From Ranitomeya imitator (Eukaryota): DNA of 64,000 nt. Under the pieces are notes generated by a model that did no database searches, was not told the DNA's origin, and saw only the letters and a list, made by a program, of their open reading frames with translations. This document shows positions 28,752 to 57,478 of the stretch, in pieces (within the stretch, counting starts at the first letter, position 1; the number at the start of each line of letters is the position of its first letter). Location of the stretch: assembly GCF_032444005.1 (NCBI RefSeq), contig NC_091290.1, positions 12,586,001 through 12,650,000 of the forward strand, read 5' to 3'. A program made the position numbers and the translations under genes.

Positions 28752-29666
28752 TTATAACAACAAGTCAGGCCTGATGTATCTAGTAAAGCAGCGGGATCTC
28801 CATCTACCCACCCTTTGAATCTCTGATTCAAGCAAACCCGCTCTAGATGCTTCTGTCGCTGCACCTATCCGAAATGAGTGAGTCCCAAATTCTGCCGCAG
28901 GCATTCCCAATCGTGACAAAACGCGTCTCAATATAGCTAAAAATTGGCCCGACACTAGGGGAAGCCCATTCTCATGAATGAAAAGCTGGGAACCGTCCTT
29001 TCTAACCCGCATGTAATCCTTTATTAACACTAATGGTCAAATGTCCTTGTTGATGGCGAATATCGGGAACCAAGTTCCCCTACCTTCCTGATCAGTTTTG
29101 GACTTACATATTCTAATCCTGATACCATCCTCGCAAATTAGTATGTCTTCCCGCCTGAGGCCACCCGGTTTATTCAGAGCCGTAGGTACAATCTCACTGA
29201 CCCGCATGGCCCCAAAGAATGCTAGGCCAAAGGCCGCTGACATTAGCGCAGCCTCGTATTTAGAATCGCACACAGGTTCCAAAGCCTTAACCAAGCTCAC
29301 TAGCAAGTCGAAGGATATAGGACGCCTGTTATCACCATGTCTATCCGCTCGCCGCCAACCTTTCAATAACTGACTGACTAGGAAATGTTTCGTGGAATCT
29401 GGCCAACCTCGCAGCTTGAAATGGAACGCTAATGCAGACACACGGTTGCGCGCCACTGAGCCCGACACTCCCATGGCATGCATTTTGGATAGAAATGCCA
29501 TTGTCACCTGCATTCGATCCTCCTCCGAAGACCCCACTGGTTTGCCGTCTGCTAAAAGACACCACTCCTCCCACGCCTTACCATAGGCTTTCCAGGTTGA
29601 TGGAGCTATCGATGAACGTATTAATGGCATCAGGTCCCCAGGACATCCCAGATCGAATGTGGGCAA
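28752..29666 (-). pseudogene. Ngaro tyrosine recombinase with one in-frame nonsense codon
   Basis: GAMRVSE, SKTDQ, GTHSFRIGAAT, GRWRS...RYIR. Track ORFs 29037..29666 and 28752..29030 are in the same frame, separated by TGA (29037-29039) then CCA TTA. Confidence 0.9.
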
Positions 29667-34828: not shown

Positions 34829-36980
34829 TAGTAACATAGTAACATAGTAACATAGTAACATAGTTAGTAAGGCCGAAAAAAGACATTTGTCCATCCAGTT
34901 CAGCCTATATTCCATCATAATAAATACCCAGATCTACGTCCTTCTACAGAACCTAATAATTGTATGATACAATATTGTTCTGCTCCAGGAAGACATCCAG
35001 GCCTCTCTTGAACCCCTCGACTGAGTTCGCCATCACCACCTCCTCAGGCAAGCAATTCCAGATTCTCACTGCCCTAACAGTAAAGAATCCTCTTCTATGT
35101 TGGTGGAAAAACCTTCTCTCCTCCAGACGCAAAGAATGCCCCCTTGTGCCTGTCACCTTCCTTGGTATAAACAGATCCTCAGCAAGATATTTGTATTGTC
35201 CCCTTATATACTTATACATGGTTATTAGATCGCCCCTCAGTCGTCTTTTTTCTAGACTAAATAATCCTAATTTCGCTAATCTATCTGGGTATTGTAGTTC
35301 TCCCATCCCCTTTATTAATTTTGTTGCCCTCCTTTGTACTCTCTCTAGTTCCATTATATCCTTCCTGAGCACCGGTGCCCAAAACTGGACACAGTACTCC
35401 ATGTGCGGTCTAACTAGGGATTTGTACAGAGGCAGTATAATGCTCTCATCATGTGTATCCAGACCTCTTTTAATGCACCCCATGATCCTGTTTGCCTTGG
35501 CAGCTGCTGCCTGGCACTGGCTGCTCCAGGTAAGTTTATCATTAACTAGGATTCCCAAGTCCTTCTCCCTGTCAGATTTACCCAGTGGTTTCCCGTTCAG
35601 TGTGTAATGGTGATATTGATTCCCTCTTCCCATGTGTATAACCTTACATTTATCATTGTTAAACCTCATCTGCCACCTTTCAGCCCAAGTTTCCAACTTA
35701 TCCAGATCCATCTGTAGCAGAATACTATCTTCTCTTGTATTAACTGCTTTACATAGTTTTCTATCATCTGCAAATATCGATATTTTACTGTGTAAACCTT
35801 CTACCAGATCATTAATGAATATGTTGAAGAGAACAGGTCCCAATACTGACCCCTGCGGTACCCCACTGGTCACAGCGACCCAGTTAGAGACTATACCATT
35901 TATAACCACCCTCTGCTTTCTATCACTAAGCCAGTTACTAACCCATTTACACACATTTTCCCCCAGACCAAGCATTCTCATTTTGTGTACCAACCTATTG
36001 TGAGGCACGGTATCAAACGCTTTGGAAAAATCGAGATATACCACGTCCAATGACTCACCGTGGTCCAGCCTATAGCTTACCTCTTCATAAAAACTGATTA
36101 GATTGGTTTGACAGGAGCGATTTCTCATAAACCCATGCTGATATGGAGTTAAACAGTTATTCTCATTGAGATAATCCAGAATAACATCCCTCAGAAACCC
36201 TTCAAATATTTTACCAACAATAGAGGTTAGACTTACTGGCCTATAATTTCCAGGTTCACTTTTAGAGCCCTTTTTGAATATTGGCACCACATTTGCTATG
36301 CGCCAGTCCTGCGGAACAGACCCTGTCGCTATAGAGTCCCTAAAAATAAGAAATAATGGTTTATCTATTACATTACTTAGTTCTCTTAGTACTCGTGGGT
36401 GTATGCCATCCGGACCCGGAGATTTATCTATTTTAATCTTATTTAGCCGGTTTCGCACCTCTTCTTGGGTTAGATTGGTGACCCTTAATATAGGGTTTTC
36501 ATTGTTTCTTGGGATTTCACCTAGCATTTCATTTTCCACCGTGAATACCGTGGAGAAGAAGGTGTTTAATATGTTAGCTTTTTCCTCGTCATCTACAACC
36601 ATTCTTTCCTCACTATTTTTTAAGGGGCCTACATTTTCAGTTTTTATTCTTTTACTATTGATATAGTTGAAGAACAGTTTGGGATTAGTTTTACTCTCCT
36701 TAGCAATGTGCTTCTCTGTTTCCTTTTTGGCAGCTTTAATTAGTTTTTTAGATAAAGTATTTTTCTCCCTATAGTTTTTTAGAGCTTCAATGGTGCCATC
36801 CTGCTTTAGTAGTGCAAATGCTTTCTTTTTACTGTTAATTGCCTGTCTTACTTCTTTGTTTAGCCACATTGGGTTTTTCCTATTTCTAGTCCTTTTATTC
36901 CCACAAGGTATAAACCGCTTACACTGCCTATTTAGGATGTTCTTAAACATTTCCCATTTATTATCTGTATTCTTATTTCT
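34829..36980 (-). mobile_element. 5'-truncated CR1 (L3) LINE
   Basis: RT ORF plus 3' UTR ending in four tatgttac-type 8-mers (34829-34860). Confidence 0.93.
34953..36950 (-). CDS. CR1 ORF2 reverse transcriptase, 5'-truncated
   Basis: KSPGPDG, NYRPVSLT, LDFSKAFD, GVPQGSVLGP, FADD, and CR1-typical LVRPHMEYCVQFW and LEKRRLRGD. Confidence 0.93.
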   Translation of the reverse strand: MFKNILNRQCKRFIPCGNKRTRNRKNPMWLNKEVRQAINSKKKAFALLKQDGTIEALKNYREKNTLSKKLIKAAKKETEKHIAKESKTNPKLFFNYINSKRIKTENVGPLKNSEERMVVDDEEKANILNTFFSTVFTVENEMLGEIPRNNENPILRVTNLTQEEVRNRLNKIKIDKSPGPDGIHPRVLRELSNVIDKPLFLIFRDSIATGSVPQDWRIANVVPIFKKGSKSEPGNYRPVSLTSIVGKIFEGFLRDVILDYLNENNCLTPYQHGFMRNRSCQTNLISFYEEVSYRLDHGESLDVVYLDFSKAFDTVPHNRLVHKMRMLGLGENVCKWVSNWLSDRKQRVVINGIVSNWVAVTSGVPQGSVLGPVLFNIFINDLVEGLHSKISIFADDRKLCKAVNTREDSILLQMDLDKLETWAERWQMRFNNDKCKVIHMGRGNQYHHYTLNGKPLGKSDREKDLGILVNDKLTWSSQCQAAAAKANRIMGCIKRGLDTHDESIILPLYKSLVRPHMEYCVQFWAPVLRKDIMELERVQRRATKLIKGMGELQYPDRLAKLGLFSLEKRRLRGDLITMYKYIRGQYKYLAEDLFIPRKVTGTRGHSLRLEERRFFHQHRRGFFTVRAVRIWNCLPEEVVMANSVEGFKRGLDVFLEQNNIVSYNY

Positions 36981-37165: not shown

Positions 37166-38775
37166 GGTATGTGCTGCTCCATCCTGCGTCCCCATCCTGT
37201 CATGCGCTGCTCCATCCTGCGTCCCCATCCTGTCATGTGCTTCTCCATCCTGCGTCCCCATCCTGTCATGCGCTGCTCCATCCTGCGTTCCCTTTCCTGT
37301 CATGCGCTGCTCCCATCCTGCGTCCCCATCCTGTCATGCGCTGCTCCCATCCTGCGTCCCCATCCTGTGATGCGCTGCTCCCATCCTGTGATGCGCTGCT
37401 CCCATCCTGCGTCCCCATCCTGTCATGCGCTGCTCCATCCTGCGTCCCCATCCTGTCATGCGCTGCTCCATCATGCGTCCCCATCCTGTCATGCGCTGCT
37501 GCATCCTGCGTCCCCATCCTTATGTGCTGCTGCATCCTGCGTCCCCATCCTGTCATGCGCTGCTGCATCCTGCGTCCCCATCCTTATGTGCTGCTGCATC
37601 CTGCGTCCCCATCCTTATGTGCTGCTGCATCCTGCGTCCCCATCCTTATGTGCTGCTGCATCCTGCGTCCCCATCCTTATGTGCTGCTCCATCCTGCGTC
37701 CCCATCCTTATGTGCTGCTCCATCCTGCGTCCCCATTCTGTTATGTGCTGCTCCATCCTGCGTCCCCATCCTTATGTGCTGCTCCATCCTGCGTCCCCAT
37801 CCTTATGTCCTGCTCCATCCTGCGTCCCCATACTGTTATGTGCTGCTCCATCCTGTGTCCCCATCCTTATGTGCTGCTCCATCCTGCGTCCCCATCCTTA
37901 TGTCCTGCTCCATCCTGCGTCCCCATACTGTTATGTGCTGCTCCATCCTGTGTCCCCATCCTTATGTGCTGCTCCATCCTGCGTCCCCATCCTTATGTGC
38001 TGCTCCATCCTGCGTCCCCATCCTTATGTCCTGCTCCATCCTGCGTCCCCATACTGTTATGTGCTGCTCCATCCTGCGTCCCCATCCTTATGTGCTGCTC
38101 CATCCTGCGTCCCCATCCTTATGTGCTGCTCCATCCTGCGTCCCCATCCTTATGTCCTGCTCCATCCTGCGTCCCCATACTGTTATGTGCTGCTCCATCC
38201 TGCGTCCCCATCCTTATGTGCTGCTGCATCCTGCGTCCCCATCCTTATGTGCTGCTCCATCCTGCGTCCCCATCCTTATGTGCTGCTCCATCCTGCGTCC
38301 CCATACTGTTATGTGCTGCTCCATCCTGCGTCCCCATCCTTATGTGCTGCTCCATCCTGCGTCCCCATCCTTATGTGCTGCTCCATCCTGCGTCCCCATC
38401 CTTATGTCCTGCTCCATCCTGCGTCCCCATCCTTATGTCCTGCTCCATCCTGCGTCCCCATCCTTATGTCCTGCTCCATCCTGCGTCCCCATCTTTATGT
38501 CCTGCTCCATCCTGCGTCCCCATCCTTATGTCCTGCTCCATCCTGCGTCCCCATCCTTATGTCCTGCTCCATCCTGCGTCCCCATACTGTTATGTGCTGC
38601 TCCATCCTGCGTCCCCATCCTTATGTGCTGCTCCATCCTGCGTCCCCATCCTTATGTGCTGCTCCATCCTGCGTCCCCATCCTTATGTGCTGCTCCATCC
38701 TGCGTCCCCATCCTTATGTGCTGCTCCATCCTGCGTCCCCATCCTTATGTGCTGCTCCATCCTGCGTCCCCATAC
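37166..38775. repeat. About 31-bp minisatellite in the Helitron
   Basis: Unit atgtgctgctccatcctgcgtccccatcctt with 33-bp variants. Confidence 0.93.
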
Positions 38776-41072: not shown

Positions 41073-44000
41073 CAGGGCCGGACTGGGACTAAAATTCAGC
41101 CCTGGCATTTGCAGTCACACAGGGCCACTTGTCACATGGTGACTGTATAATATCTTTGTACACTTGTAGGTTACAAGAAGTGAGGGGAGAGTAACACGAC
41201 TATATAACATATAATCACAGCTGTATCCAGCATTACAGATCAGTCCTATTTATTGCTTTTTACCAAGAAAAGCCGCTACTTTACCTCCATAATCGGATCT
41301 CGTAGATAATGAACGGATTGTGGAACCTCATTCTGATGCTCCATACTCTTTGCCTGCAGCCACTTTTGGTTCCGCTGCGCAGCACGAGACCCGGTGACTC
41401 TGAAGAGCGGTGACATCAGTAACGTCACCGCTCTTCAGATATTCCGGGTCTTGCGCTGAGCTTGGAGACTTTGAAGAGCAGTATTGTTACTACCGTCACC
41501 GCTCTTCAGAGTCGCTGGGTCTCGCCAGGTCTGGGCTAGTAGTGGGGGTGTCTGATAGACACCTCTCCATTACTTACACCAGGGATTGATAGCAGCTGAC
41601 ATTACACAGCTGACATCAACCCTAAACATCATTACACATACCAGAATTAAATGCTCTGGCGGCTGGGAAAAGCAGCAGAGTTAGTACCCGGCGCCTGGGA
41701 ATAGCGCTAACTACAACTGTCATCATCCTTGCCTGGTCTCCCTGTGAAGTATTTCTGCTGTATTTACATGCGCTGATCTCAGGCCACTAAATGAGTGTGA
41801 TTGACAATACTGAAGTCGTTCGCTTGTTTCCCGGCCTCTTTACACCAACTGAGAAAGAATGAAGGGAACAGAACAATCACAATTAGATCAATCTGTCCCC
41901 ACACAGTATCATGTTATCAGCAGCACAACTACAGTTTACACCGGTGATGTGCTGCTGAGAACAAGGATTTCTGTTCCCACATAAACAATCCAATCACTCG
42001 ATGAATAGGCAGCATTTTGCTTGTTTAGTATAATACACCCTCATAGTCCTCCACATATTATAATGTGCACCTCAGTCCTCCATATAGTATAATACGCTCC
42101 TCATAGTCCTCCATATAGTATAATACACTCCTCTGTCCTCCATATAGTATAATACACTCCTCATAGTCCTCCATATAGTATAATACACTCCTCATAGTCC
42201 TCCATATAGTATAATACAATCCTCAGTCCTCCATATAGTATAATACACTCCTCAGTCTTCCATATAGTATAATACACTCCTCAGTTCTCCATATAGTATA
42301 ATACACTCCTCATAATCCTCCATATAGTATACTACACTCCTCATAGTCCTCCATATAGTATAATACACTCCTCATAGTCCTCCATATATTAAAATACACT
42401 GCAATTCCTCCATATAGTATAATACACTCCTCAGTCCTCCATAAAGTATAATGTACTGCCACAGTCCTCCATATAGTATAATACACTGCTCAGTCGTCCA
42501 AATAGTATAATACATTCCTCATAGTGCTCCATATAGTATAAAATAGTATAATGCCCCGCCATTGTCATCCATGTAGTACAATTCACTTCCCATAGTATAA
42601 TGCACCCCATAGTTCTTAATATAGTATAATGTATTCCCCATAGTCCTCGATACAGTATAACACAGCCCACATATAGTATAATGATGCCACCCCAGAGTAT
42701 AATGCAGCCACCACACAGAATATACTGTAGCCCCCTGAGTATAATGTAACCCCCCAGAGAATATAATGCAGCCCCTCTCATATAGTATAATGCAGCCCCT
42801 GCATATATAATATATGGTAGCCCCCTCATAGAGCATAATGCAGCCCCCCATAGAATATAATGTAGCCCCTCCATAGAATACAATGCAGCCCTCATTATAT
42901 AGTATAATGCAGCTCCCCATAGAATATAATGTAGCCCCCTCATAGAATATGATGCAATCACCCCTCATAGAATATAATACAGCCCCCCATAGAATTCAAT
43001 GTAGCCCCCAGAGAATGTGATACAGTCCCCCATAGAATATAATACAGCCCCCCATAGAATATAATACAGCCCCCCATAGAATATAATACAGCACCCCATA
43101 GAATATAATACAGCACCCCATAGAATATAATGTAGTCCCCAGAGAATGTAGCACAGCCCCCATAGAATGTAATACAGCCCTCCCCATAGAATGTAATACA
43201 GCCCGCTGCCCCCCATAGAATGTAATACAGCCCTCCCCTATAGAATGTAAGACAGCCCCCCATAGAATGTAACAGAGCACAGCCCCCATAGAATATAATA
43301 CAGCACAGCCCCCATAGAATGTAATACAGCACAGCCCCCATAGAATGTAATAAGCCCTTCCCCATAGAATGTAATACAGCCCTTCCCCATAGAATGTAAT
43401 ACAGCCAGCCCCCATAGAATGTAATGCAGCCAGCCCCATAGAATGTAATGCAGCCAGCCCAATAGAATGTAATGCAGCCAGCACCCATAGAATGTAATGC
43501 AGCCAGCCCCCATAGAATGTAATGCAGCGAGCCCTATAGAATGTAATGCAGCCAGCACCCATAGAATGTAATGCAGCCAGCACCCATAGAATGTAATGCA
43601 GCCAGCCCCCATAGAATGTAATGCAGCCAGCCCCATAGAATGAAATGCAGCAAGCCCAATAGAATGTAATACAGCCCTCCCCATAGAATGTAATGCAGCC
43701 AGCCCCCATAGAATGTAATGCAGCCAGCCCCATAGAATGTAATGCAGCCAGCCCAATAGAATGTAATGCAGCCAGTACCCATAGAATGTAATGCAGCCAG
43801 CCCCCATAGAATGTAATGCAGCCAGCCCCATAGAATGTAATGCAGCCAGCCCAATAGAATGTAATGCAGCCAGCACCCATAGAATGTAATGCAGCCAGCC
43901 CCCATAGAATATAATGCAGCCAGCCCCCATAGAATGCAATGCAGCCAGCCCCCATAGAATGTAATACAGCACAGCCCCCATAGAATGTAATACAACACAG

Positions 44001-44634
44001 CCTCCATGGAATGTAATACAGCACAGCCTCCATGGAATGTAATACAGCACAGCTCCCATAGAATATAATACAGCACAGCCCCCATAGAATGTAATACAGC
44101 CCTTCCCCACATTCCCCATAGAATGTAATGTAGGCAGCCCCCATACAATGTAATGCAGCCAGCTTCCATAGAATGTAATACAGCCCCCCAATTGCCCCAC
44201 AATCCAGTTATCACTCATTGATATATATTTAAAAAAAACAAACAAAAAACAAAAAAAAAACACTCTCCTCACCTCTCCTCGTACCCTGCACTGCTCCCGG
44301 CTCCGGTCTCAGCAGCCGCAGTCTGACCGCCTGACACACAGCAGGTGCGTGATGATATGACGTCATCGCGCACCCGCAGTGTCAGAGGCAGGCAGAGCGG
44401 GGAATGATGGGAGAGGGAGCGACAGCAGACGCTCTCTCCTCCATCATTGCATTCAACTGTACCGGCATCAATGACGCCGGTATAGTTGAATGCGGGGCGG
44501 GGAGTGTGTCGACAGCGGGGAGAGTGTGCTAACAGCAGGGGGAGTGTGCTGACAGCGGCACACTCGAGCGGCCCACTACTGCCACCGGCCCTTCTGGCAT
44601 TTGCCAGAACTGCCCGATGGCCAGTCCGGCCCTG
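41073..44634. mobile_element. Non-autonomous hAT element (3562 bp) carrying minisatellites
   Basis: TIR cagggccggactgg / ccagtccggccctg; perfect 8-bp TSD tctgagct (41065-41072, 44635-44642). Confidence 0.92.
42040..44190. repeat. Graded 24-31 bp minisatellite inside the hAT element
   Basis: Unit drifts from cctcatagtcctccatatagtataatacact to gcagccagcccccatagaatgtaat. Confidence 0.9.
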
Positions 44635-46320
44635 TCTGAGCTTCTTTCAGCTGATTTATGACCACAGATCACATAAAAGTTGAAAGTGCAGATAAACAAA
44701 GAGCCTGTAAAAGCCAAACGGTGCAAAATTTTTAATGAAACCCAATCGCAAAACAAATTAAACGGAAATTAAACGGTGGCCGACCCCTTTTGTGATCCTG
44801 TTTATTACAGTGTATTTCTAATATTATATTGATATGTTTCTATCACCAGGTTGGTCTAAATTTTCACTTTTGTGCTTCAGTGATCGATTTCATCCTTTCT
44901 ATACACAAACAATGCAATCCAATCAATGACTAATTCCAGGCTTATAATATGTAAAAAAAAAATGTAAAAAAAGGGTATAAAATGTACTATCAATCCTATA
45001 GAAATACATTTCATTAGCACATAATAATTAAATCAGACAAGAGGTCTTTAAATTGGGTTTATAGTTATCAATACTCTCCCCGATTCATGAAGTCGGACAA
45101 CCAAATGTTTAAAGGGATAGTCACATTAGGTTAGTATCTACATGGATACAGTGATAACAAGGACAATGGGTCTGATTGTAGCAAAATGAAGTCCCTTTAT
45201 TATGGCGACTGCGCCTATTAATAATCATAATAGTATAATAATATTAATACCACTAATATTTCAGTATTTATTATTGATTTGTACAGGTGAAATGTGTGGG
45301 TAGACAAAGTGCCCTTGTACTACCAATTCATACTTTGAATATAATGCCACTGTCAAAGGGGTACATTGCAGCGGAAACTTTTGCACGCCACGCATATTTA
45401 ACAATTTTTTTTCCAGTAATTATTGCAAAAATTGACACACAATTTGCAAATCACTAAATGCAAATATAAACTGAACGGCTCTCACTTAAAAAAAAAAATG
45501 TTTTATTATAGCGACGCAATTTTACCATAGAAATAGTGACACCTACAGGCCATTTTATGTACAACACAGTAAAAATATAATGATTTAGAACCTGTCCTGT
45601 TACAGTTTAATCGTCCTGATTTCATTGGATTTTACAAGTAAATATATATATAAATATATATAATATGTCGCAAAGGGGGCAATGAATGAAGCAACATGTA
45701 AAAGCAGTGTCATCACTTAAAAGGGTTTTCTCGATATCATAAATGGTTAAAATTGCAACGATCTTGTAAAACAAGCAACTATGCAATTCACGGTCTCAAA
45801 AATATAGGGATCTTTAATTTTATGGCTTACTGTCTAGGTTCCCAGTCACTGTGCACAGTTTATCAGCAGTGGTCGATTTCCTAAGCGAGGAGCACAGCGC
45901 TTACAAGCGCTTTCCAATAGAGCTTGTAAGCGCTGCTCTGAAGCTGGCAGGATCACGGCATCTGGCTGGCCTCGGTGCCCCTGTGCTCCAGAAACAAAGC
46001 TGCCTAATCTAGCAACATCAGAGCGCTCACAGCTAGGGCCTGTCGTGCCTCCATGTTATTGGGGCATAAAGACATCATAAAGGGGGCTCCTAGGGGCCAT
46101 AAATAAGCATCTCCAGGACCCTTTGGACATCCATTCATCTGAATGGTCGCTATGTAATAATACAGTTCCCCTCCAGTGGCTGTCACAAGGGACATTCCTG
46201 GCTTTCCCATTGAAGGCGCTGGGATTCGCATTTTGACTCCCACTTTAAATAGGATTTTTAATGAAAGGTCTTGAATGAATCCAGGTCCCCGACTCGTCCC
46301 CATCTTCCCATATGTTGTCC

Positions 46321-46558
46321 TCACTCTTCCCCGGTGGTGTCAAATCCCATATTACTGTAGTGCGTCTTATAGAAGCTCAGATCCGGTTGGATCACCGGGA
46401 GACGCTTAGCCGGGTTGACCATGTTGTCATAAACGATGTCCTTGCTTGCGTGACTAATACGCCGGTAAATACTGGTGGTGTTCCACGTGGGTACAGGGAC
46501 TTGTGTGGTCTCGGGTGCGTGACTCCTCTGTTCTCCCATGCAGCATATACATTTATTT
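46321..46558 (-). CDS. Link receptor exon 8 (cytoplasmic tail, terminal)
   Basis: Acceptor tttttattctccAG; encodes NKCICC followed by ORF 46321..46539; TGA at 46321-46323. Confidence 0.85.
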
Positions 46559-49500
46559 CTGGAGAATAAAAATATATACGTTACGTTGAGGACGATCAGA
46601 AAGATGCTTAGCTAAGGTTTCTAATGAGAAACAGCGCCACCCTTGTGCAGAGGTTGTATGTGGTAATGCAGCTTAGCTCGTTTTATGTGATTGCAATACC
46701 ATTCAAGACCCATCCATAAGGGTGGCGCTGTTTCAGGAAAAAAAAAAAAAGAACTGACGGTAATAAAGGAGCATTTTCTATTCTAATCCACCCTATTAAC
46801 CTAAGCAAGGAGTAGCTCCGACCACCGGATGGAGCCGTGCAGGTTGTTCCTGCTACTCACCCTCTCATGAAGGCAGCGGCTAGAAGTAATATCACAAATA
46901 TGAAGGCGATGATGCACCCGATGGCGATTTTCTTCCAGGCTGTAAATAACAAGAAGCAGAAGGGTGAGGAAGCGTCATCAATTACGCGGAAATGCAGAAT
47001 TCTGCAGGTTTCCAATTCTCAGGGAGCAATGCATTGTGGGACTCTTGAGAACAGGGCTCTGTTCACATTGCATTGGATCCTTCCATTGGAGGTATATGAA
47101 GCGATCACTTTCTTGAACGAAAGTATGTGACCTGCACCACTTTATAGGCATACGATGGCATATGTTGCCCATAGGCTCCCGTTTTACACAGGGGCAATCT
47201 GTCAGCAACGTTTTAAGCGGCAGTCAGGAAGAGTGATGCATTGGTCACTGTTTAACGATTAAAACGATATCTATATCGTCCCGATCCGTTGTGTCGTTGC
47301 AGAGAAATCAGTATTTTTATCGATATGCAAATCAGACTGCAAGTGCACAAGACGTTGATAATGCACTTGCAGTCTATGACTCCTCCTCAGTTCTCCCTGT
47401 CCAGCGTCGTTCTCATCTGCTCGATCGGCAGCTGTTGTAAATAATATTATCTACAGAAAACATCATCGGTCTCTGCAGCCAATCGAGCAGCAATGCGTTG
47501 GCCAACTGCAGAGAAGCTGTGGACTGCAAGTGCACATGAAACGCCCAGTGCACTTGGAGTCCATGACTCCTCCTCAGTTCTCCCTGTCCAGCGTCGTTCT
47601 CATCTGCTCGATCGGCAGCTGTTGTAAATAATATTATCTACAGAAAACATCATCGGTCTCTGCAGCCAATCAAGCAGCAATGCGTTGGCCAACTGCAGAG
47701 AAGCTGTGGACTGCAAGTGCACATGAAACGCCCAGTGCAATTGGAGTCCATGACTCCTCCTCAGTTCTCCCTGTCCAGCGTCGTTCTCATCTGCTCGATC
47801 GGCAGCTGTTGTAAATAATATTATCTACAGAAATCATCATCTGTCTCTGCAGCCAATCGAGCAGCAATGCGATGGCCAACTGCAGAGAAGCTGTAGACTG
47901 CAAGTGCACATGAAACGCCCAGTGCACTTGCAGTTCATGACTCCTCCCCAGTTCTCCCTGTCCAGCGTCGTTCTCATCTGCTTGATCGGCAGCTGTTGTA
48001 AATATTATTATCTACAGAAAACATCATCTGTCTCTGCAGCCAATCGAGCAGCAATGCGTTGGCCAACTGCAGGGAAGCTGTGCACTGCAAGTGCACATGA
48101 GACGCCCAGTGCACTTGCAGTCCATGACTCATCCTCAGTTCTCCCTGTCCAGCGTCGTTCTCATCTGCTCGATCGGCAGCTGTTGTAAATATTATTATCT
48201 ACAGAAAACATCATCTGTCTCTGCAGCCAATCGAGCAGCAATGCGATGGCCAACTGCAGAGAAGCTGTAGACTGCAAGTGCACATGAAACGCCCAGTGCA
48301 CTTGCAGTTCATGACTCCTCCCCAGTTCTCCCTGTCCAGCGTCGTTCTCATCTGCTCGATCGGCAGCTGTTGTAAATATTATTATCTACAGAAAACATCA
48401 TCTGTCTCTGCAGCCAATCGAGCAGCAATGCGTTGGCCAACTGCAGGGAAGCTGTGGACTGCAAGTGCACATGAAACGCCCAGTGCACTTGCAGTCAAAT
48501 TTACATATGGATAAAAGTAAGGATTTCTCTGCAATAAAACAACCGATCGGGACGATATAGGCATCATTTTAATTGTCGAACAGAGACCAATTCATCCCTA
48601 CCTTCCGTTGATGCTTCAAATACTTTATTGATACAAATAGAGAAAAGAAAAATAAAATAGATACAAATCGGTACAAAAACACCAACGTAAAATAATGAAA
48701 AAAAATAAAACTTTGAAGCTGATGTACTTGGCTGAATTATGGCGCTGGGCAGGTGGCATAGATTTAGTGCCAAGTTTAGTCCTAGATATACGGCCACACA
48801 CTTGGTGTAATGTTTAATGTGGAATTATAATAACATAAATATATAAAATCACAACAAATAATAACAGGAACTTACTCCGGTTATCTTTTATTACGAGGAC
48901 ATCAGACACTGTAAGACAACAAAATGCATTACATGATGTTCCTTGCACAGGCTGCAAAAACGTACTAAGTCCATGTTCACACGATGCGTTCACGGTTTAC
49001 TATACATTTCTGAAATTGATGCAAAAACTATTAATTTTTTTACAGCAATTTTACAAAATTGCATACAAAGCCTTATTCACATGATACTTATTTTTGTTTT
49101 ACGAGATTCTTTAGCCTGCGTTCTCACGTTGTGATCTAAAATCACATTCACACATTTTATTTTTTTTACCATTTTTTTTTTATCTGCAGCATAGCCAATT
49201 CTTTTATCATTTTTACTGAAGTTTTTCTCTATTGAGATCAAAGTGAGATAGTAAAAAAGGATCAAAATATGCATCTGCAGTTTTCTTGTCATATGCAAAA
49301 AATGTTTAAAAACCTTATGTGTGAATGAGGCATAAACAATGCAGGACAAAAATAGTGCACCCAAGAAATGCATCATGTGAACAGACCTCTAAAAGGGTAT
49401 AAATTAGCCCTAGATTGCGGGATCAGTATTACAGAACCATAACATGAGAATGATGGCTAAATACACATACATCATTTTTGGGGGGCCAGACTGAATCCTT

Positions 49501-52500
49501 AAAAGGGTAAATGGGTTTAGAAAATCTGTTTTCATATATTATGAATGGTAGATCCTGTGTTATCAGCTGTATATAGAGGTGTTATCAGTCATTGTACAGG
49601 AGGAGGAGGTGAGCTGTGACATCACCTATTGTGAATGGTGGATCCTGTGTTATCTACAGTATATAGAGGTGTTATCAGTCATTGTACAGGAGGAGGTGAG
49701 CTGTGACATCACCTATTGTGAATAGTGGATCCTGTGTTATCTACAGTATATAGAGGTGTTATCAGTCATTGTACATGAGGAGAAGGTGAGCTGTGACATC
49801 ACCTATTGTGAATGGTGGATCCTGTGTTATCTACTGTATATAGAGGTGTTATCACTCATTGTACAGGGGGAGGAGGTGAGGTGTGACATCACCTATTGTG
49901 AATGGTGGATCCTGTGTTATCTACTGTATATAGAGGAGTTATCAGTCATTGTACAGGAGGAGGAGGTGAGCTGTGATATCACCTATTGTGAATGGTGGAT
50001 CCTGTGTTATCTATTGTATATAGAGGTGTTATCACTCATTGTACAGGGGGAGGAGGTGAGCTGTGACATCACCTATTGTGAATGGTGGATCCTGTGTTAT
50101 CTATTATATATAGAGGTGTTATCAGTCATTGTACAGGAGCAGGAGGTGAGCTGTGACATCACCTATTGTGAATGGTGGATCCTGTATTATCTACTGTATA
50201 TAGAGGTGTTATCAGTCATTGTACAGGAGGAGGAGGAGGTGAGCTGTGACATCACCTATTGTGAATAGTGGATCCTGTGTTATCTATATATATGATAGGC
50301 ATTATCAGGTTATTTCCCAATGATAATTCTTGTACTTATTGATTGTCTGGTGAATACTTACAGGCCGGATTATAGCAGAAGGCTGAACCGTAACTTAACG
50401 TATCATCACAGGAATTCTGTTCAAAAATCTTGCCGCTCACCTTTCCCACTCCCCAATTATACCAGGCAAGACTGATGGAAGAAAAAGTACCGACATGGTC
50501 ACACATCGCACATCGCACGGTGTTACTATATGACACATATAACATTATGCAGGATTAGAGACACATGGCAGCTTTCTAAAAAAAAAAAAAAAGACAAAAC
50601 CACAGTGCCCCAGCTGTCTGCAGGTTGTGTGCGGTACTGCAGCTATGCTCCATTCACTTCAATGGAGACCAGACACAAACTGTGGATCGAGGTGGTGCTG
50701 TTTGTGGACGAGGGCAGCCAAGTTTTTTCCCTAATTCAAGCAAACGTGTTGCTTTTGAAAAGAATGGTTGAAAAGTTACGGCAACAGCAAAAGTTTGTTG
50801 CATTTTTAGAATAAATCCGTTTTATTAAGACATTTGGAGAGAAGATGCCAGAGTTACGTTTTTGTTGACAACAAGAAGTCCGGCCATATCAGTTCTTAGG
50901 CTCACGGCTGTGACTTGTTACTGTACATCTATCTGAGATACATCCTGAGGGTCTCAGTAGTTCTAGGAGTCATGAACCAGGAGGATCAGGATGAACAGCA
51001 CAAAATACCTCCCATTTGCACTCAATGGATCACATCTTACCTACTGTTTGCCATGAGACCTTTATTCTCCTCCATCTCCTCTTTGGTGGCTATGGTGAGT
51101 CCGCTGCCTGTGCAGGTTTTGCTGGCGTTTTCATAGGATGGGACAAGACCGGTAGGTATAGGAAGTATCTGAATCATCCCTGAATGTATGGAAAGGACCA
51201 AATTTCATCATTACGTCATACATGAACTGATTCGCTGTGCTCATACTGGTCTGCCGTGCTCATACTGGTCCGCTGTGCTCATACTGGTCTGCTGTGCTCA
51301 TACTGGTCTGCTGTGCTCAAACTGGTCCACTGCAATCAAACTGGTCTGCTGCAATCAAACTGGTCCGCTGTGCTGGTCGGCTGCACTCCAATTAGCCTGC
51401 TGTGCTCAAACTGGCCTGCTGCGCTCAAAATAGTCTGCTGTACTTAAACTGGTTTACTGCACTCAAACTGGTCCGCTGTGCTCATACTGGTTTGCTGTGC
51501 TCATACTCGTCCGCTGCACTCAAACTGGACCGCTGTGCTTAAACTGGTTTACTGCGCTCAAACTGGTCTGCTGTGCTCATACTAGTCTGCTGTGCTCATA
51601 CTGGTCTGCTGTGCTTAAACTGGTTTACTGCGCTCATATTGGTCTGCTGCGCTCATACTGACCTGCTGTGCTCATACTGGTCTGCTGTGCTTAAACTAGT
51701 TTACTGCACTCATACTGGTCTGCTGTGCTCATACTGGTCTGCTGTGCTTAAACTAGTTTACTGCGCTCATACTGACCTGCTGTGCTCATACTGGTCTGCT
51801 GTGCTTAAACTAGTTTACTGCGCTCATACTGACCTGCTGTGCTCATACTGGTCTGCTGTGCTTAAACTAGTTTACTACGCTCATACTGGTCTGCTGTGCT
51901 CATACTGGTCTGCTGTGCTCATACTGGTCTGCTGCGCTCATACTGGTCTGCTGTGCTTAAACTGGTTTACTGCACTCACATACTGACCTGCTGCGCTCAT
52001 ACTGGTCTGCTGCAGTCATACTGACCTGCTGTGCTCAACTGTTGAACTTGCCTGCATCTTACTGATCCCGATACATAAATAGAAAGTCTCGTGTACGATA
52101 TCAGCAGCACCAGGAAAGCGGACAGGTTGTCTGAGAAGATAATAGTTTTGCAGATATCTCCGTGGATGGACTCACCTGAGGAGCTATTGACACAGAATGT
52201 GGATCTGATGTTCGGACAGTCTCTGATCAGAACACCAACGTTATAATCAGCACACCCTTTAAATGGCGTCAGACGGAGCATGACAAGTCTCTTCTCCTGT
52301 GTCCAGCCCCACCTGGTTAGAATAAAAAAAAAGAAAAAAGAAAGTTAAATATCAGCTTTACTATATATTCACCCTGAAACAAAGCCTCCCACCTCTCATT
52401 GTTGCAAACGATAGAGACTTAGTGGTCCTCCGTCTCTAATAAGAGTGTCTTTTTAATCCAAAAAGTTGGATAGGACCTCCAGGGTCCCTGTGTCCGACCC

Positions 52501-55500
52501 CCTGCTCAATGCAGGACTCACTAAACCATCTGACAGGTGTCTGTCCGGCCTCTGTGTGAAGACTTCCATTGAAGGAGAACTCACCACCTCTCGAGGCCGC
52601 CTGTTCCACTCATTGATCACAGCCATGGTCATAAATATATTACAGGCTTTCCCATATTGTCGGCCATACTTACTTGCAGAGCTCGTAGCCCTTTGTAAAC
52701 GCAAAAGTGATATTCTCCAATGTCGCCAGTCTGCTGTAGTGCGCGGCACAGGCCACTTTGGCGCCATCATAATTAACTGAGATATTATTTGGCATGAACA
52801 CTCCGGAAATTACTGGTAGGAAAAAAAAAAAAAAAAATATTTACAGAATTGTTTTTTTTTTAAAATAGATGTTAATGAAAGGGTTAACAATGCAGGGGTT
52901 GAGTTAAATTTGCCTGCAGTGCCTCTGCAGGAGAAACAAAGCATTACAAGTTCCCATTGAAGTCTATGGACTCCCTGTGCAATGCGTGGACGAAACTGAA
53001 AGAAAGGAAGGTCCATGAGCGCAAGATTTATTACATTGATGGAGAGATGCTGAAATGCATATGTTAGTGTAGCGCCACACTTGGCTGTGTTTGGTATTGC
53101 AGTCTGATCTATAATGCCTGATCCAATCTATGGGCAGAAATGGAGCCGATTTATGGGGGACGACCGGCTTCCAGGACCCTGGGAATTGTACTGGCTGTCT
53201 TTTCTGTGCCGTACTCAACATTTAATCACCTCTGTGACCCCTTCGTTCTCAGGATCGTAGGGGGTTCTCTGATGTTGGACCGCCACTGATTGTAAAATGA
53301 TGGCCACTCCTAGCAATATGCTATCGCTTTATAAGATGGAAATATAAATGTTAACTACTTCTTGAAGTGTGACGAGCGTGTATGTTGGGAGTGGGAGTAT
53401 ACAGCGAGCTCAGGAGGGAAGCATACACCATTCACGGTCCATACCGGCTGTATTATACAGCCAGCACCTGCCTCTAACAGCAGCAACCGGAGCTAGCTCT
53501 GATTGCTGCTGTGTAACCACAGAGCAGAGCAATCGCGCCATGTAATTGTTACAGGGCCCATAGCATGGTCATTTCCTCCACAGGAGATTCTCACAAAATT
53601 AGAAAATCATTAAAACGTTAAATGTATTTCAGTTCTTCAATACAAAAAGTGAAACTCCTACATTATATAGCGTCATTACACACAGAGTGATCTACTTCAA
53701 GTGTTTATTTCTGTTAATGTTGAGGATTATGGCTTACAGTCAATGAAAACCCAAATGTCATTATCTCCGTAAATTAGAATAATTAACAAAAACCACCTGC
53801 AAATGCTTCCTAAGCGTTTATAAAGGTCCCTTAGTCTGTTTCAGTAGCTCCACAATCATGGGGAAGACTGCTGACCTGACAGATAGCCAGAAGGCGTCAT
53901 TGACACACATGGAATAGATCACCCTGTTTGTAACATATAATACTACTATAATATATGAGTTTCACTTTTTGTATTGAAGAACTGAAATTAAATTAATGTT
54001 ATCTTGATATTCTAATTTTGTGAGAAGCACCTGTATATACTGCAACACAGTGATATCACAGTATAGAGAATAACTAATCAAAAACAACTTCAGGTCCCAT
54101 AAGGGAACTTAAAACTGAATTAGGTTTGGGGCCTTTTTATCCCGGGGGTGGGGGAGGTCTGTGATGACCCGTGACGGGTCCCCGTTTTTGCATTTTCTAC
54201 AAAGTCTCCATTGCTTTAGGTACGGAGTATATAAACACAGAGATGCAAGGTTATTAGACAGGAACATAATATATAGACGAGAGGTAATAAGTGTATAAAA
54301 CACAGGAGCACGCCTTTAAGAAGTTACCCTTAAATGGATTGTAGCTGGCTGATGCGGAGTGGGGTTGCAGTATTGTTAGTGAGGTGGAGAAGGCGGGTTT
54401 ATTTTGTAAACCATTCTGTATATTGCAAATGCCCTTGGCTCTAATGCAAAATCTATAAAGGGGGCCGCACCCGCCATGTGCCACTTACAGCACTGGATTT
54501 TTTTATGTGCTGACATACCACTTGGACCCCAGGAAGAACCAATTATAAGGGGGCCACTAACACCCCCAAAGCAGGTAGAAATGTGCATTATGAGGAGCTA
54601 CTGGACTGCAAAGGGGCCCATGTATTGTTTTTGTACAGGGGCCTCTTCTATCCGTGTCAGCCAGTGTGTAGAGGGGCTTTTAGGCCCCCTCTGCTTGAAT
54701 TGTTAACTCTTCCCTCAATATAGCATAGCCCCCCCGGTTAAAGCCACAGTTGCCAATGTATGGTAGAAGAAAGCACAAATGTGCTAGTCAGAAGGCTACG
54801 GTAGAAGAAAGCACAGATGTGCTAGTCAGAAGGCTACGGTAGAAGAAAGCACAAATGTGCTGGTCAGAGGGCTACGGTAGAAGAAAGCACAGATGTGCCA
54901 GTCAGAGGGCTACGGTAGAAGAAAGCACAGATGTGCCAGTCAGAGGGCTACGGTAGAAGAAAGCACAAATGTGCTAGTCAGAAGGCTACGGTAGAAGAAA
55001 GCACAGATGTGCCAGTCAGAGGGCTACGGTAGAAGAAAGCACAGATGTGCCAGTCAGAGGGCTACGGTAGAAGAAAGCACAGATGTGCCAGTCAGAGGGC
55101 TACGGTAGAAGAAAGCACAGATCTGCCAGTCAGAGGGCTACGGTAGAAGAAAGCACAGATCTGCCAGTCAGAGGGCTACGGTAGAAGAAAGCACAGATCT
55201 GCCAGTCAGAGGGCTACGGTAGAAGAAAGCACAAATGTGCCAGTCAGAGGGCTACGGTAGAAGAAAGCACAAATGTGCCAGTCAGAGGGCTACGGTAGAA
55301 GAAAGCACAGATGTGCCAGTCAGAGGGCTACGGTAGAAGAAAGCACAGATCTGCCAGTCAGAGGGCTACGGTAGAAGAAAGCACAGATGTGCCAGTCAGA
55401 GGGCTACGGTAGAAGAAAGCACAGATCTGCCAGTCAGAGGGCTACGGTAGAAGAAAGCACAGATCTGCCAGTCAGAGGGCTACGGTAGAAGAAAGCACAA

Positions 55501-56194
55501 ATGTGCCAGTCAGAGGGCTACGGTAGAAGAAAGCACAGATCTGCCGGTCAGAGGGCTACGGTAGAAGAAAGCACAAATGTGTTGGTCAGAGGGCTACGGT
55601 AGAAGAAAGCACAGATGTGCCGGTCAGAGGGCTACGGTAGAAGAAAGCACAAATGTGTTGGTCAGAGGGCTACGGTAGAAGAAAGCACAGATCTGCCAGT
55701 CAGAGGGCTACGGTAGAAGAAAGCACAGATGTGCCGGTCAGAGGGCTACGGTAGAAGAAAGCACAAATGTGTTGGTCAGAGGGCTACGGTAGAAGAAAGC
55801 ACAGATGTGCCAGTCAGAGGGCTATGGTAGAAGAAAGCACAAATGTGCTAGTCAGAGGGCTACGGTAGAAGAAAGCACAGATGTGCAAGTCAGAGGGCTA
55901 CGGTAGAAGAAAGCACAGATGTGCCAGTCAGAGGGCTACGGTAGAAGAAAGCACAGATGTGCTGGTCAGAGGGCTACGGTAGAAGAAAGCACAAATGTGC
56001 CAGTCAGAGGGCTACGGTAGAAGAAAGCACAGATGTGCCAGTCAGAGGGCTACGGTAGAAGAAAGCACAGAAGTGCCAGACAGAGGGCTAAGGCCAAGAC
56101 CTGGTGGGATCGGCTCACCTTGTATGGGGTCTGCAGAAGATGAGATTCCGATGACCGAGATGAGAACGCAGAGGTGTAAGGTTTGGTGGATCAT
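46321..56194 (-). CDS. Tandem Link-module type I membrane receptor, CD44/LYVE1 family-like; 8 coding exons, 316 aa
   Basis: join(complement) 56194-56119, 52812-52674, 52312-52176, 51179-51041, 50471-50362, 48908-48876, 46939-46861, 46558-46321 = 951 nt. All introns are GT-AG, phases 1,2,1,2,1,1,2, with no internal stop. Protein: MIHQTLHLCVLISVIGISSSADPIQVISGVFMPNNISVNYDGAKVACAAHYSRLATLENITFAFTKGYELCKWGWTQEKRLVMLRLTPFKGCADYNVGVLIRDCPNIRSTFCVNSSSGMIQILPIPTGLVPSYENASKTCTGSGLTIATKEEMEENKGLMANSSLAWYNWGVGKVSGKIFEQNSCDDTLSYGSAFCYNPALSDVLVIKDNRTWKKIAIGCIIAFIFVILLLAAAFMRGNKCICCMGEQRSHAPETTQVPVPTWNTTSIYRRISHASKDIVYDNMVNPAKRLPVIQPDLSFYKTHYSNMGFDTTGEE. Confidence 0.88.
46861..46939 (-). CDS. Link receptor exon 7 (transmembrane)
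   Basis: Acceptor cttcttgttatttacAG; 79 nt; WKKIAIGCIIAFIFVILLLAAAFMR; donor GTGAGT; phase 1-2. Confidence 0.9.
47263..48568. mobile_element. TTAA-flanked Kolobok/T2-like element containing about 6 x 187-bp hairpin repeats (Link-gene intron 6)
   Basis: TTAA at 47259-47262 and 48569-48572; inverted arms ctatatcgtcccgatc / gatcgggacgatatag and tgcagagaaatc / gatttctctgca; 187-bp period 47336-48495. Confidence 0.75.
48876..48908 (-). CDS. Link receptor exon 6 (33-nt stalk micro-exon)
   Basis: Acceptor ttttgttgtcttacAG; donor GTAAGT; encodes (L)SDVLVIKDNR(T); phase 1-1. Confidence 0.75.
49540..50290. repeat. 90-bp tandem satellite, about 8 copies (intron 5)
   Basis: Unit atcctgtgttatctactgtatatagaggtgttatcagtcattgtacaggaggaggaggtgagctgtgacatcacctattgtgaatggtgg. 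Confidence 0.93.
50362..50471 (-). CDS. Link receptor exon 5 (degenerate Link module 2, C-half)
   Basis: Acceptor tttttcttccatcAG; 110 nt; LAWYNWG...NSC...AFCYNPA; donor GTAAGT, phase 1. Confidence 0.85.
51041..51179 (-). CDS. Link receptor exon 4 (degenerate Link module 2, N-half)
   Basis: Acceptor cctttccatacattcAG; 139 nt, the same length and phases as exon 2; YENASKTCTGSGLTIATKEEME, resembling LYVE1 FTEAKEACRLLGLSLAGKDQVE; donor GTAAGA. Confidence 0.85.
51233..52040. repeat. 19-bp-type minisatellite (intron 3, between the Link modules)
   Basis: Unit actggtctgctgtgctcat with aaactggtttactgc variants. Confidence 0.9.
52176..52312 (-). CDS. Link receptor exon 3 (Link module 1, C-half)
   Basis: Acceptor tttattctaaccAG; 137 nt; WGW...KGC...VGVL...TFCVNSS, resembling LYVE1 YGW...PKC...VGVL...AYCYNSS; donor GTGAGT. 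Confidence 0.9.
52674..52812 (-). CDS. Link receptor exon 2 (Link module 1, N-half)
   Basis: Long T tract then cctaccAG acceptor; 139 nt; SGVF...AKVAC...LAT...GYELC, resembling CD44 GVF...AADLC...LPT...GFETC; donor GTAAGT, phase 2. Confidence 0.9.
53580..54034. mobile_element. Internally deleted Tc1-like element
   Basis: TIR caggagattctcacaaaattagaaaatc / gatattctaattttgtgagaagcacctg. Confidence 0.8.
54762..56090. repeat. 38-bp minisatellite, about 35 copies (intron 1, ending about 30 nt from the exon 1 donor)
   Basis: Unit ggtagaagaaagcacagatgtgccagtcagagggctac. Confidence 0.95.
56119..56194 (-). CDS. Link receptor coding exon 1 (signal peptide)
   Basis: ATG at 56194 in context gtcagcATGA; encodes MIHQTLHLCVLISVIGISSSADPIQ plus 1 nt; donor GTGAGC; phase 1 joins exon 2. 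Confidence 0.8.
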
Positions 56195-57478
56195 GCTGAC
56201 GGCCTCCGCTCCTAGTCCCGGAGATCTGCTGTCTGGAGGGATCGTGCTTCTTCTGATACTACAGGGAGGATCTGGAGCCAAACTTGTGTGACACAGACCG
56301 GCCCACACCCCTGGGGCAGAACACGGGGCTGTGACGTGAGAACGCACCCGCAGCTGTGTCATCAGCGTCATTCTGTACCTAAGAAGTCACCATGTGGGAT
56401 CTGTGACTGCAGCCATCTGAGATCCTATCACTGGATTATACCCTAAACCCTTATACAGCAGCCAGACCTGGAGATCAGTTTGAAGGGGTTGTCCCATTTA
56501 GAAAACCCCCTTAAATACACACTAGTCTGACCCTAACTTCTCGAACCTCATCCATTGGACCGAGTAGTTACAAAGAATGTCTCTCACTCTGGAGGAGACA
56601 ACCTGCTGATGTGAATGGGCACTGTGCAATGCCTCATTTCTCCAGCGGGAGCGCTGTAGGGAAATCGAACACTTGCATACTGATGAATTGTTCCAAAAAA
56701 TGGTGCATGTCTCTTTAAAATGAGAAAAAAATGTAGTCTATTGCAAAAAAGAGCCACACATCCCTTCCCAGAATATCCTATCCCCAGTGATTTCAGAAAC
56801 CCCAAGATCACGTCCCTCTACGGCGCTCAGACTCTAATGCTGCCACCCGAATATTCACTCTCTCCCAATGAATATGGGAGAAAGCTCTGGGTATCGATGG
56901 ATTATTTAACACTTGTCAGGTACATCCTAAGACATTTGATTCATCAGCCGTAAAGTATTTAAGGCTCAGCCATGTTGTACCGGGTCCTTGTATGAAGCAT
57001 TCCTCCTGACGCACGCGGTGGTTAGACACCTGGGCCGAGGTCACATTCTGTACCGTGTCCCACCAACACCCAGATTCGGTGCGGCCCTGGAGGACGGACT
57101 TCCATCAGACGTCTGGAATCTGGTGGAACAAGTTCTGCAGTTTCTAGATCTAGCCTCCAGCGACATCATCACGTAAAGCCGTGCTCTTCCATCTGCGGCT
57201 GTTCAGTTACTGCAAACTACAACTCCCAGCATTTTTACAGTAGACAAGTTTCCATCACATCTTGGCGGATTCTGGCGTCTCATGATGAGAATAGTCATCA
57301 TCAGCTTTGTTCCTGCCATGATGGAAATGTAACAACACCCAATCATCCGTGGGATTTGTACTACTCTACCTTGGTCCCCTAAACCATTATAGGGCAATGT
57401 TAAATCCCCCCCGAAAAAAAACAACAACAATCCTTCATAAATTTTATTGAATTCCTGCCTCCTTTGTTAATTACCAGG

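Follow-up and report, generated by a model that had tools for sequence, protein, structure and literature searches.

Receptors and matrix proteins of the Link-module superfamily follow a textbook division, in which CD44 and LYVE1 are single-Link membrane receptors for hyaluronan whereas tandem Link modules belong to secreted matrix proteins. CD44 combines a single extended Link domain with a mucin-like stalk that includes variant exons and with an ERM/ankyrin-binding tail, and the sole Link module of LYVE1, which carries extensions on its flanks and a third disulfide, is followed by a long Ser/Thr-rich stalk. In HAPLN proteins and in the G1 region of the lecticans (aggrecan, versican, neurocan and brevican), all of them secreted, an immunoglobulin V-type domain stands in front of two Link modules that are both canonical, with four cysteines each. 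We analysed here a 64,000-nucleotide stretch of the genome of the frog Ranitomeya imitator (contig NC_091290.1, positions 12,586,001 to 12,650,000; the whole stretch is called the window below), which carries on its minus strand a gene for a membrane protein with two Link modules in tandem (the Link gene). This protein and its relatives form a coherent, undescribed family, so far amphibian-only, with an architecture that is unreported for Link-module receptors.

The Link gene occupies positions 46321-56194 of the window and consists of eight exons separated by GT-AG introns, with a 951-nucleotide coding sequence that specifies 316 amino acids (Table 1). Contigs of public RNA runs were mapped onto 50300-56250 and 46000-51200, and all seven splice joints were seen in contigs from three studies (X1/X2 of P1, X5 of P2 and X6 of P3). 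A single contig of X5 (1657 nucleotides) contains exons 1-5 and 8 as pieces and also backs the 5/6, 6/7 and 7/8 joints. A comparable transcript, whose exon 4/5 and 5/6 junctions fall at about the same places, was obtained from a related species (run X10), and the contigs of run X15 read through into introns and contain none of the seven joints. No alternative exons were seen in the RNA-run contigs of the gene. A variant model with an exon 4 donor at 51044 and an exon 8 acceptor at 46522, corresponding to 303-304 amino acids, is excluded by the RNA joints at 51041 and 46558. The spliced model is identical at 316 of 316 residues to the R. imitator database protein P0016, an unnamed, uncharacterised entry whose UniRef name is "Link domain-containing protein"; the sequence is therefore undescribed but not newly discovered, since the protein had already been predicted in public databases. 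The eight-exon, 316-residue model put forward in a preliminary description of this DNA is thus confirmed, as are the phases that it had read within the gene, namely a phase-2 intron in codon K72, immediately past the second Link cysteine (C71), a phase-1 intron six codons past the last Link cysteine (C112), in codon 118, and a transmembrane exon of 79 nucleotides that starts in phase 1 and ends in phase 2. The homologous gene of Spea bombifrons has the same eight-exon layout with the same pattern of intron positions and phases. A processed pseudogene or an annotation artefact is ruled out by the genomic introns, the abundant spliced RNA and the maintenance of frame and exon structure in frogs as distant as Spea, and a tblastn search of the window with the model detected no second copy. 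The Link gene is an expressed, conserved protein-coding gene for a type I membrane glycoprotein of the Link-module superfamily.

The encoded protein comprises, in this order, a signal peptide, a canonical Link module (module 1), a degenerate Link module (module 2), a stalk, a transmembrane helix, a CxCC cluster and a cytoplasmic tail. The signal peptide has a hydrophobic core at residues 7-17, modelled by AlphaFold2 (AF2) as a helix at residues 2-16, and the transmembrane helix corresponds to a hydropathy peak at residues 216-234 and to an AF2 helix at residues 210-238. The ectodomain is modelled with predicted local distance difference test (pLDDT) values of 77-93. The stalk, encoded mostly by the 33-nucleotide exon 6, spans 18 residues from C196 to the transmembrane helix, close to the length of about 15 residues originally proposed, and there is no cysteine between the signal peptide and C47, in agreement with the claim that the additional N-terminal cysteine extension is absent. 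As a type I membrane protein of about 320 amino acids with an N-terminal Link module, the frog protein resembles LYVE1; the second Link module, the short stalk and the tyrosine motifs of the tail distinguish it from that receptor. It shares with CD44 the type I Link receptor organisation and membrane-proximal cysteines.

Module 1 is by sequence a canonical Link module with both predicted disulfides. P0016 matches the Pfam Xlink profile (PF00193) with 51.5 bits for a cut-off of 27, and the scores of its relatives range from 48 to 128 bits, with E-values of 1e-16 to 1e-37 and two to three matched stretches for the full-length ones; exon 2 alone is recognised with an E-value of 5.7e-5 over profile positions 10-46. 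C47, C92 and C112 are present in all 25 anuran sequences and C71 in 24 (Mixophyes has D), and these cysteines line up with those of LYVE-1 and CD44, giving the C1-C4, C2-C3 disulfide pattern. A family profile of module 1, compared module by module, scored 59.3 bits against human LYVE-1, 53.0 against mouse LYVE-1, 50.4 against CD44, 36.9 against TSG-6 and 35.2 and 25.6 against the two modules of aggrecan. Foldseek analysis of module 1 of the AF2 model retrieved LYVE-1 with the lowest root-mean-square deviations (rmsd 2.5-2.8 A; template-modelling (TM) score 0.59-0.61 by target, about 30% identity), followed by CD44 and TSG-6. The nearest language-model neighbours of the protein, taken as a lead only, were also LYVE1 (0.88), LYVE1b (0.85) and CD44 (0.83). 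The affinity to CD44 and LYVE1 suggested in the preliminary description is therefore supported by the profile scores and in line with the language-model neighbours, and LYVE1 is the closest described protein in per-module profile score, rmsd of the fold matches and language-model cluster.

Module 2, previously described as Link-like, also matches the Link fold. In the PDB, its profile matches TSG-6, aggrecan and LYVE-1 best, and these three alignments keep the Link register, also at the C-terminal aromatic-C-Y-N-P stretch; exon 4 matches Xlink weakly, at the register seen for exon 2. When predicted alone, module 2 is modelled with a pLDDT of 83 and a predicted TM score (pTM) of 0.73, and its best 12 PDB matches are all Link modules, with TM scores of 0.72 for TSG-6 and 0.69-0.75 for LYVE-1. 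It departs from the four-cysteine Link pattern: C140 and C196 are the equivalents of C1 and C4, Ser or Asn occupies the C2 position, and the C2-C3 disulfide is lost in the anuran alignment. We consider module 2 to be a degenerate Link module because only these two cysteines and an additional one, C185, remain.

The exon pairs 2/3 (139 and 137 nucleotides) and 4/5 (139 and 110 nucleotides) have identical phases (1-2 and 2-1), exons 2 and 4 end at the same position of the Xlink profile, and hhalign compares module 1 with module 2 at 86% probability. This equivalence in phase and profile end point is evidence that the exon pair was duplicated in frame. In caecilian proteins, type-2 modules match the profile of frog module 2 at 1e-7 to 1e-10 and others match that of module 1 at about 1e-25, which suggests that the duplication is old; module 2 would have originated from the duplication of a two-exon Link unit before the split between frogs and caecilians. 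C104, an extra cysteine of module 1, and C185 of module 2 are both present in 24 of the 25 anurans and both missing in Spea, and a Microcaecilia sequence lacks both equivalents, as judged by eye. Since the two cysteines are present or lost together, an inter-module disulfide is the simplest reading, and modules 1 and 2 are probably tied by a C104-C185 bond. Spea bombifrons (L001 10001-14647; P0005) represents a natural double mutant for these two positions, the sole one among the 25 anurans. The tandem organisation recalls HAPLN and lectican G1, but those proteins possess neither the transmembrane segment and tail nor the degenerate second module of the frog protein, which has no immunoglobulin domain, and the relative geometry of the two modules differs from theirs by an rmsd of about 18 A.

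The cytoplasmic tail of about 80 residues follows a juxtamembrane NKCICC (CxCC) cluster. In R. imitator it contains the tyrosines Y269 (SIYRRI), Y281 (YDNM), Y301 and Y305 (YSNM). From caecilians to neobatrachians, the family members share the motif M[KR]GNxFxCC, a PTWNxT and, after it, a tyrosine that mostly lies within a YxxPhi context, a YxN near the middle of the tail and a C-terminal Y[SDT]N[ML]; Y269, Y305 and N307 are kept wherever the tail is present (23 of the 25 anuran sequences), with a second YxN in mid-tail. An exhaustive phmmer search with the 78-residue tail against 1.84 billion representatives returned four proteins, three full-length frog members of about 320 amino acids, each with Xlink matches in two stretches, and one fragment of 136 amino acids. 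Neither CD44 nor any relative from outside the family was recovered from these 1.84 billion representatives, in line with the absence of a CD44-type tail reported from the DNA alone, and the tail is likewise unrelated to that of LYVE1. The language-model neighbours of the transmembrane segment plus tail were MUC1 and SCIMP, with scores of 0.71-0.78 that lie within the chance range. The resemblance to the MUC1 tail and to SCIMP-type palmitoylated adaptors, namely a juxtamembrane cysteine cluster, a disordered tail and YxxM-/YxN-type motifs, is a functional analogy only, as there is no detectable sequence homology and the ectodomains are unrelated.

Profile searches of a collection of 5.8 billion proteins led to the identification of about 30 family members. 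Those of anurans come from Bombina, Discoglossus, Rhinophrynus, Xenopus tropicalis, Pelodytes, Spea, Mixophyes, Bufo, Hyla, Dendropsophus, Leptodactylus, Rhinoderma, dendrobatids, ranoids and microhylids, and those of caecilians from Geotrypetes (P0026), Microcaecilia (P0028) and Rhinatrema (P0029). The caecilian proteins have the same transmembrane segment and tail but from three to five Link modules, in the order type 1, B, type 2 in Microcaecilia and type 1, B, type 2, type 1, type 2 in Rhinatrema. The best single-module match of module B is human CD44 (47 bits); either anurans lost this module or caecilians gained it. No relatives with this tail were found outside anurans and caecilians in searches of limited reach, and a search of AFDB clusters with the whole model retrieved only generic Link proteins, with no clear member outside amphibians, so that the suggestion of an amphibian-restricted family holds within the range of these searches. 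Database entries are named "uncharacterized protein", "unnamed protein product" or "Link domain-containing protein", with the exception of one "LYVE1-like" (Nanorana) and two "aggrecan core protein(-like)" (NCBI), and no publication dealing with the family or its LOC identifiers was found; the protein is not a characterised orthologue. Spliced transcripts, Link profile and fold matches and the lack of a characterised orthologue thus go against all three of the refutations foreseen in the preliminary description, whose interpretation is supported. In Nanorana parkeri (L002), the last coding exon has two matches about 6.3 kb apart, at 38210-38461 and 44512-44763, both with 94% identity, pointing to either a duplication at the locus or an artefact of the assembly.

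In Spea bombifrons, the orthologue of the Link gene is located between an FBXO3-like gene and CD59, all three on the same strand. The FBXO3-like product contains F-box, SMI1_KNR4 and DUF525 domains, the domain set of FBXO3. The exons that flank the Spea gene have no counterpart in the R. imitator window, and no genes were called on either side of the Nanorana copy. In human, the gene order is CD59, FBXO3, LMO2 ... PDHX, CD44; CD59 and FBXO3 are neighbours in 11p13, where CD44 is found as well, and no gene is listed between CD59 and FBXO3 (PMC9408430). Comparison of the Spea and human orders indicates that the amphibian gene sits in the CD59-FBXO3 interval of the conserved CD44-bearing block. 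Because this slot differs from that of CD44 (PDHX-SLC1A2), orthology with CD44 is disfavoured; the position would fit a paralogue of the CD44/LYVE1 clade that is local and old, and the Link gene would be such a paralogue.

To evaluate the putative ligand surface, we compared module 1 with the described hyaluronan-binding sites. For CD44, the hyaluronan contacts considered are R41-Y42 and R78-Y79, and the corresponding positions were read by eye from the sequences in the profile alignments; the R78-Y79 dyad has a similar counterpart in K72-W73 of the frog protein. In LYVE-1 structures, the binding surface is formed by Y87, W116, I97, the C85-C106 disulfide, K105 and K108 (PMC11926218). On the aromatic and hydrophobic floor of the groove, Y87 corresponds to W73, which is invariant, and I97 to M83, kept in 24 of the 25 anurans; the C85-C106 disulfide is kept as C71-C92.

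The best overall explanation, which we judge marginally probable, is that the family consists of amphibian type I Link receptors, paralogous to CD44 and LYVE1, in which a glycan-binding module 1 is coupled to a tyrosine-based output of the tail. Beyond gene structure, expression, fold and distribution, every step of this mechanism, including ligand and signalling, is one that we infer from the sequences. Module 1, held near the membrane atop module 2, would have as its ligand hyaluronan or else a glycosaminoglycan or matrix glycan related to it, probably contacted through the conserved K72-W73, W75, M83, R/K102 and the C71-C92 disulfide. Module 2 could act as a rigid pedestal, probably bridged to module 1 via C104-C185, and the cysteines C241, C243 and C244 of the juxtamembrane cluster may be palmitoylated. 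Engagement of the ligand would lead to phosphorylation of the conserved YxN/YxNM tyrosines and to docking of Grb2- or PI3K-type SH2 proteins; the YxxPhi motif may additionally, or instead, drive internalisation.

Several observations weigh against this explanation. The ceiling lysines K105 and K108 of LYVE-1 correspond to variable positions, often acidic or small, its W116 is replaced by R/K102, and the R41-Y42 dyad of CD44 is not conserved (N35-I36). Charge also disfavours a polyanionic ligand, as module 1 is near neutral rather than clearly basic (net charge -3 to +4 across the family) and module 2 is acidic in every member (-2 to -7). The tail, predicted to be disordered (pLDDT below 50), can for this reason be read through its motifs only; the S-x-Y-x-x-I/V motif of the SIYRRI context, which resembles an immunoreceptor tyrosine-based inhibitory motif (ITIM), occurs in neobatrachians only; and the synteny is known from one species, Spea. 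Binding of hyaluronan is consequently plausible but far from assured, since its contact residues are only partly conserved: we estimate that hyaluronan itself has somewhat less than an even chance of being the ligand, and that some glycosaminoglycan or matrix-glycan ligand is fairly probable.

Two other readings bear on function. Internalisation of matrix fragments has been proposed for LYVE-1 and Stabilin-2, and the frog protein could similarly be mainly an endocytic or clearance receptor, with the membrane-proximal YxxPhi tyrosine (YRRI, YKQV, YQPM or YHPV) recruiting AP-2 for the uptake of bound matrix fragments. Such a role, which we regard as rather doubtful, would agree with the near invariance of Y269, with the hydrophobic residue at +3 in most frogs and all three caecilians, and with a short stalk and Link module suited to a scavenger; LYVE-1 is moreover implicated in hyaluronan uptake (PMC5122770). 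However, the best-conserved elements of the tail, two YxN motifs and the C-terminal Y[SDT]N[ML], are better suited to SH2 docking than to sorting, and in Discoglossus the first site is YRPR. It is also conceivable that the Link fold serves to bind a protein or another non-glycosaminoglycan ligand, as in the C-type-lectin-like (CTLD) receptors of natural killer (NK) cells, which would make the family immune-type receptors rather than matrix sensors. The loss of the basic hyaluronan contacts of CD44 and LYVE-1, together with the non-basic module 1, would fit this view, as would a weak match of Xenopus module 2 to Lectin_C, the presence of CTLD NK receptors among the weaker fold matches and the ITIM-like and YxNM motifs of neobatrachian tails. 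We nevertheless consider it unlikely, since every significant match, in sequence or in fold, is to a Link module from a hyaluronan binder and since K72-W73 mirrors CD44 R78-Y79 and W73 and M83 mirror LYVE-1 Y87 and I97 (PMC11926218).

Regarding origin, descent from secreted tandem-Link proteins (HAPLN or lectican G1) by gain of a transmembrane segment, outside the CD44/LYVE1 lineage, might be suspected from the whole-model Foldseek search, whose top matches are aggrecan and HAPLN with both modules aligned, and from the automatic aggrecan-like names of two members at NCBI. This scenario appears very unlikely in view of the per-module scores, higher for LYVE-1 (59 bits) and CD44 (50) than for aggrecan (35 and 26), the lack of an immunoglobulin domain in the Pfam search, a module orientation unlike that of aggrecan and HAPLN, the resemblance of the extra caecilian module to CD44, the location of the gene in a CD44-bearing block and the repetition of the module 1 exon pair in module 2. 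That the gene is no more than the CD44 or LYVE1 orthologue of frogs, as the name of the Nanorana copy and the nearest language-model clusters might indicate, is hardly credible: the two Link modules, the 18-residue stalk, the missing N-terminal extension cysteines, the recovery of frog relatives only in the exhaustive tail search, the FBXO3-like/CD59 position and an identity of only about 30% to the Link modules of LYVE-1 and CD44 all stand against it.

Table 1. Positions of the Link gene, its splice joints and the tandem repeats in the window.
Feature	Position	Strand	Content	Evidence or remark
Exon 1, coding part	56119-56194	-	ATG 56194-56192, signal peptide, ends in phase 1	RNA contigs join 56119 to 52812
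5' untranslated region, minimum extent	56195-56250	-		X5 contig reaches 248 nucleotides further upstream
Exon 2, 139 nucleotides, phase 1 to 2	52674-52812	-	Module 1 first half, through C71 and two bases of codon K72	
Exon 3, 137 nucleotides, phase 2 to 1	52176-52312	-	Module 1 second half: W73/W75, C92, C104, C112	
Exon 4, 139 nucleotides, phase 1 to 2	51041-51179	-	Module 2 first half: SYENAS..C140..IATKE	RNA joints
Exon 5, 110 nucleotides, phase 2 to 1	50362-50471	-	Module 2 second half: AWYNWGVG, C185, FC196YNP	
Exon 6, 33 nucleotides	48876-48908	-	Short membrane-proximal stalk, one N-glycosylation sequon (N210)	RNA joints
Exon 7, 79 nucleotides, phase 1 to 2	46861-46939	-	Transmembrane helix, about residues 215-236	RNA, hydropathy, AF2
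Exon 8, coding part	46321-46558	-	NKCICC cluster and cytoplasmic tail, stop TGA 46323-46321	46558/46861 joint in X1, X5, X6
3' untranslated region, minimum extent	46000-46320	-		Contig runs about 81 nucleotides beyond 46000
Exon 1/2 joint	56119 / 52812	+ coordinates		RNA-run contigs
Exon 2/3 joint	52674 / 52312	+ coordinates		RNA-run contigs
Exon 3/4 joint	52176 / 51179	+ coordinates		RNA-run contigs
Exon 4/5 joint	51041 / 50471	+ coordinates		RNA-run contigs
Exon 5/6 joint	50362 / 48908	+ coordinates		RNA-run contigs
Exon 6/7 joint	48876 / 46939	+ coordinates		RNA-run contigs
Exon 7/8 joint	46861 / 46558	+ coordinates		RNA-run contigs
Intronic minisatellite	54762-56090		38 bp x 35	
Intronic minisatellite	51234-52041		19 bp x 43	
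Intronic minisatellite	49537-50308		90 bp x 8.6	
Intronic minisatellite	47362-48496		187 bp x 6	
Satellite array, lower + coordinates than gene	7449-11088		40 bp x 91	
Satellite array, lower + coordinates than gene	37380-38773		31 bp x 44	
Satellite array, lower + coordinates than gene	1555-2805		86 bp x 14.5	
Satellite array, lower + coordinates than gene	25153-26304		44 bp x 26	
Satellite array, lower + coordinates than gene	42026-44185		25/49 bp x ~50	

The window is rich in repeats and mobile elements. Four of the seven introns of the Link gene hold large minisatellites, and intron 1 also contains, at 53580-54034, the remnant of a non-autonomous DNA transposon of about 455 bp with 88-nucleotide terminal inverted repeats that are 86% complementary. 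As its depth reaches thousands in all the runs mapped, this remnant represents a repeat of high copy number with widespread transcription. In the contigs of the RNA runs, the 90-bp array is extremely common, at depths between thousands and tens of thousands, and it is probably part of a dispersed repeat family. A Ty3/gypsy-type retrotransposon is located at 17853-21986 on the plus strand, with two long open frames of 1048 and 328 amino acids that together encode gag, protease, reverse transcriptase, RNase H, the zinc finger and core of an integrase, an SH3 domain and a chromodomain. Retroelement reverse-transcriptase open reading frames are present on the minus strand at 29633-33218 (575 amino acids, with an adjacent frame of 685) and at 34956-36950 (665 amino acids). 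The large satellite arrays give rise to spurious long frames in the list of open reading frames.

The family described here breaks the division between single-Link receptors and secreted tandem-Link proteins, since its members carry Link modules in tandem, as many as five in caecilians, and are membrane-anchored with conserved tyrosine motifs in the tail, and automatic names such as "LYVE1-like", "aggrecan core protein-like" and "uncharacterized" mask one coherent family. It illustrates the in-frame multiplication of a split, two-exon Link unit and provides both a datable paralogue for reconstructing the origin of CD44 and LYVE1 and a testable candidate for an amphibian-specific matrix sensor. 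A more ambitious proposal, which we put forward as speculative and unlikely as it stands, is that the family represents a third vertebrate lineage of membrane receptors for hyaluronan or glycosaminoglycans. This lineage would have arisen next to CD44, in the block equivalent to 11p13, with a structure produced by duplicating the two-exon Link unit, and amphibians alone would have retained it (the CD59-FBXO3 slot being empty in humans); its matrix binding would be wired directly to phosphotyrosine signalling of the Grb2/PI3K type. If true, the existence of such a lineage could bear on amphibian-specific aspects of hyaluronan biology, for instance in skin, metamorphosis or regeneration.

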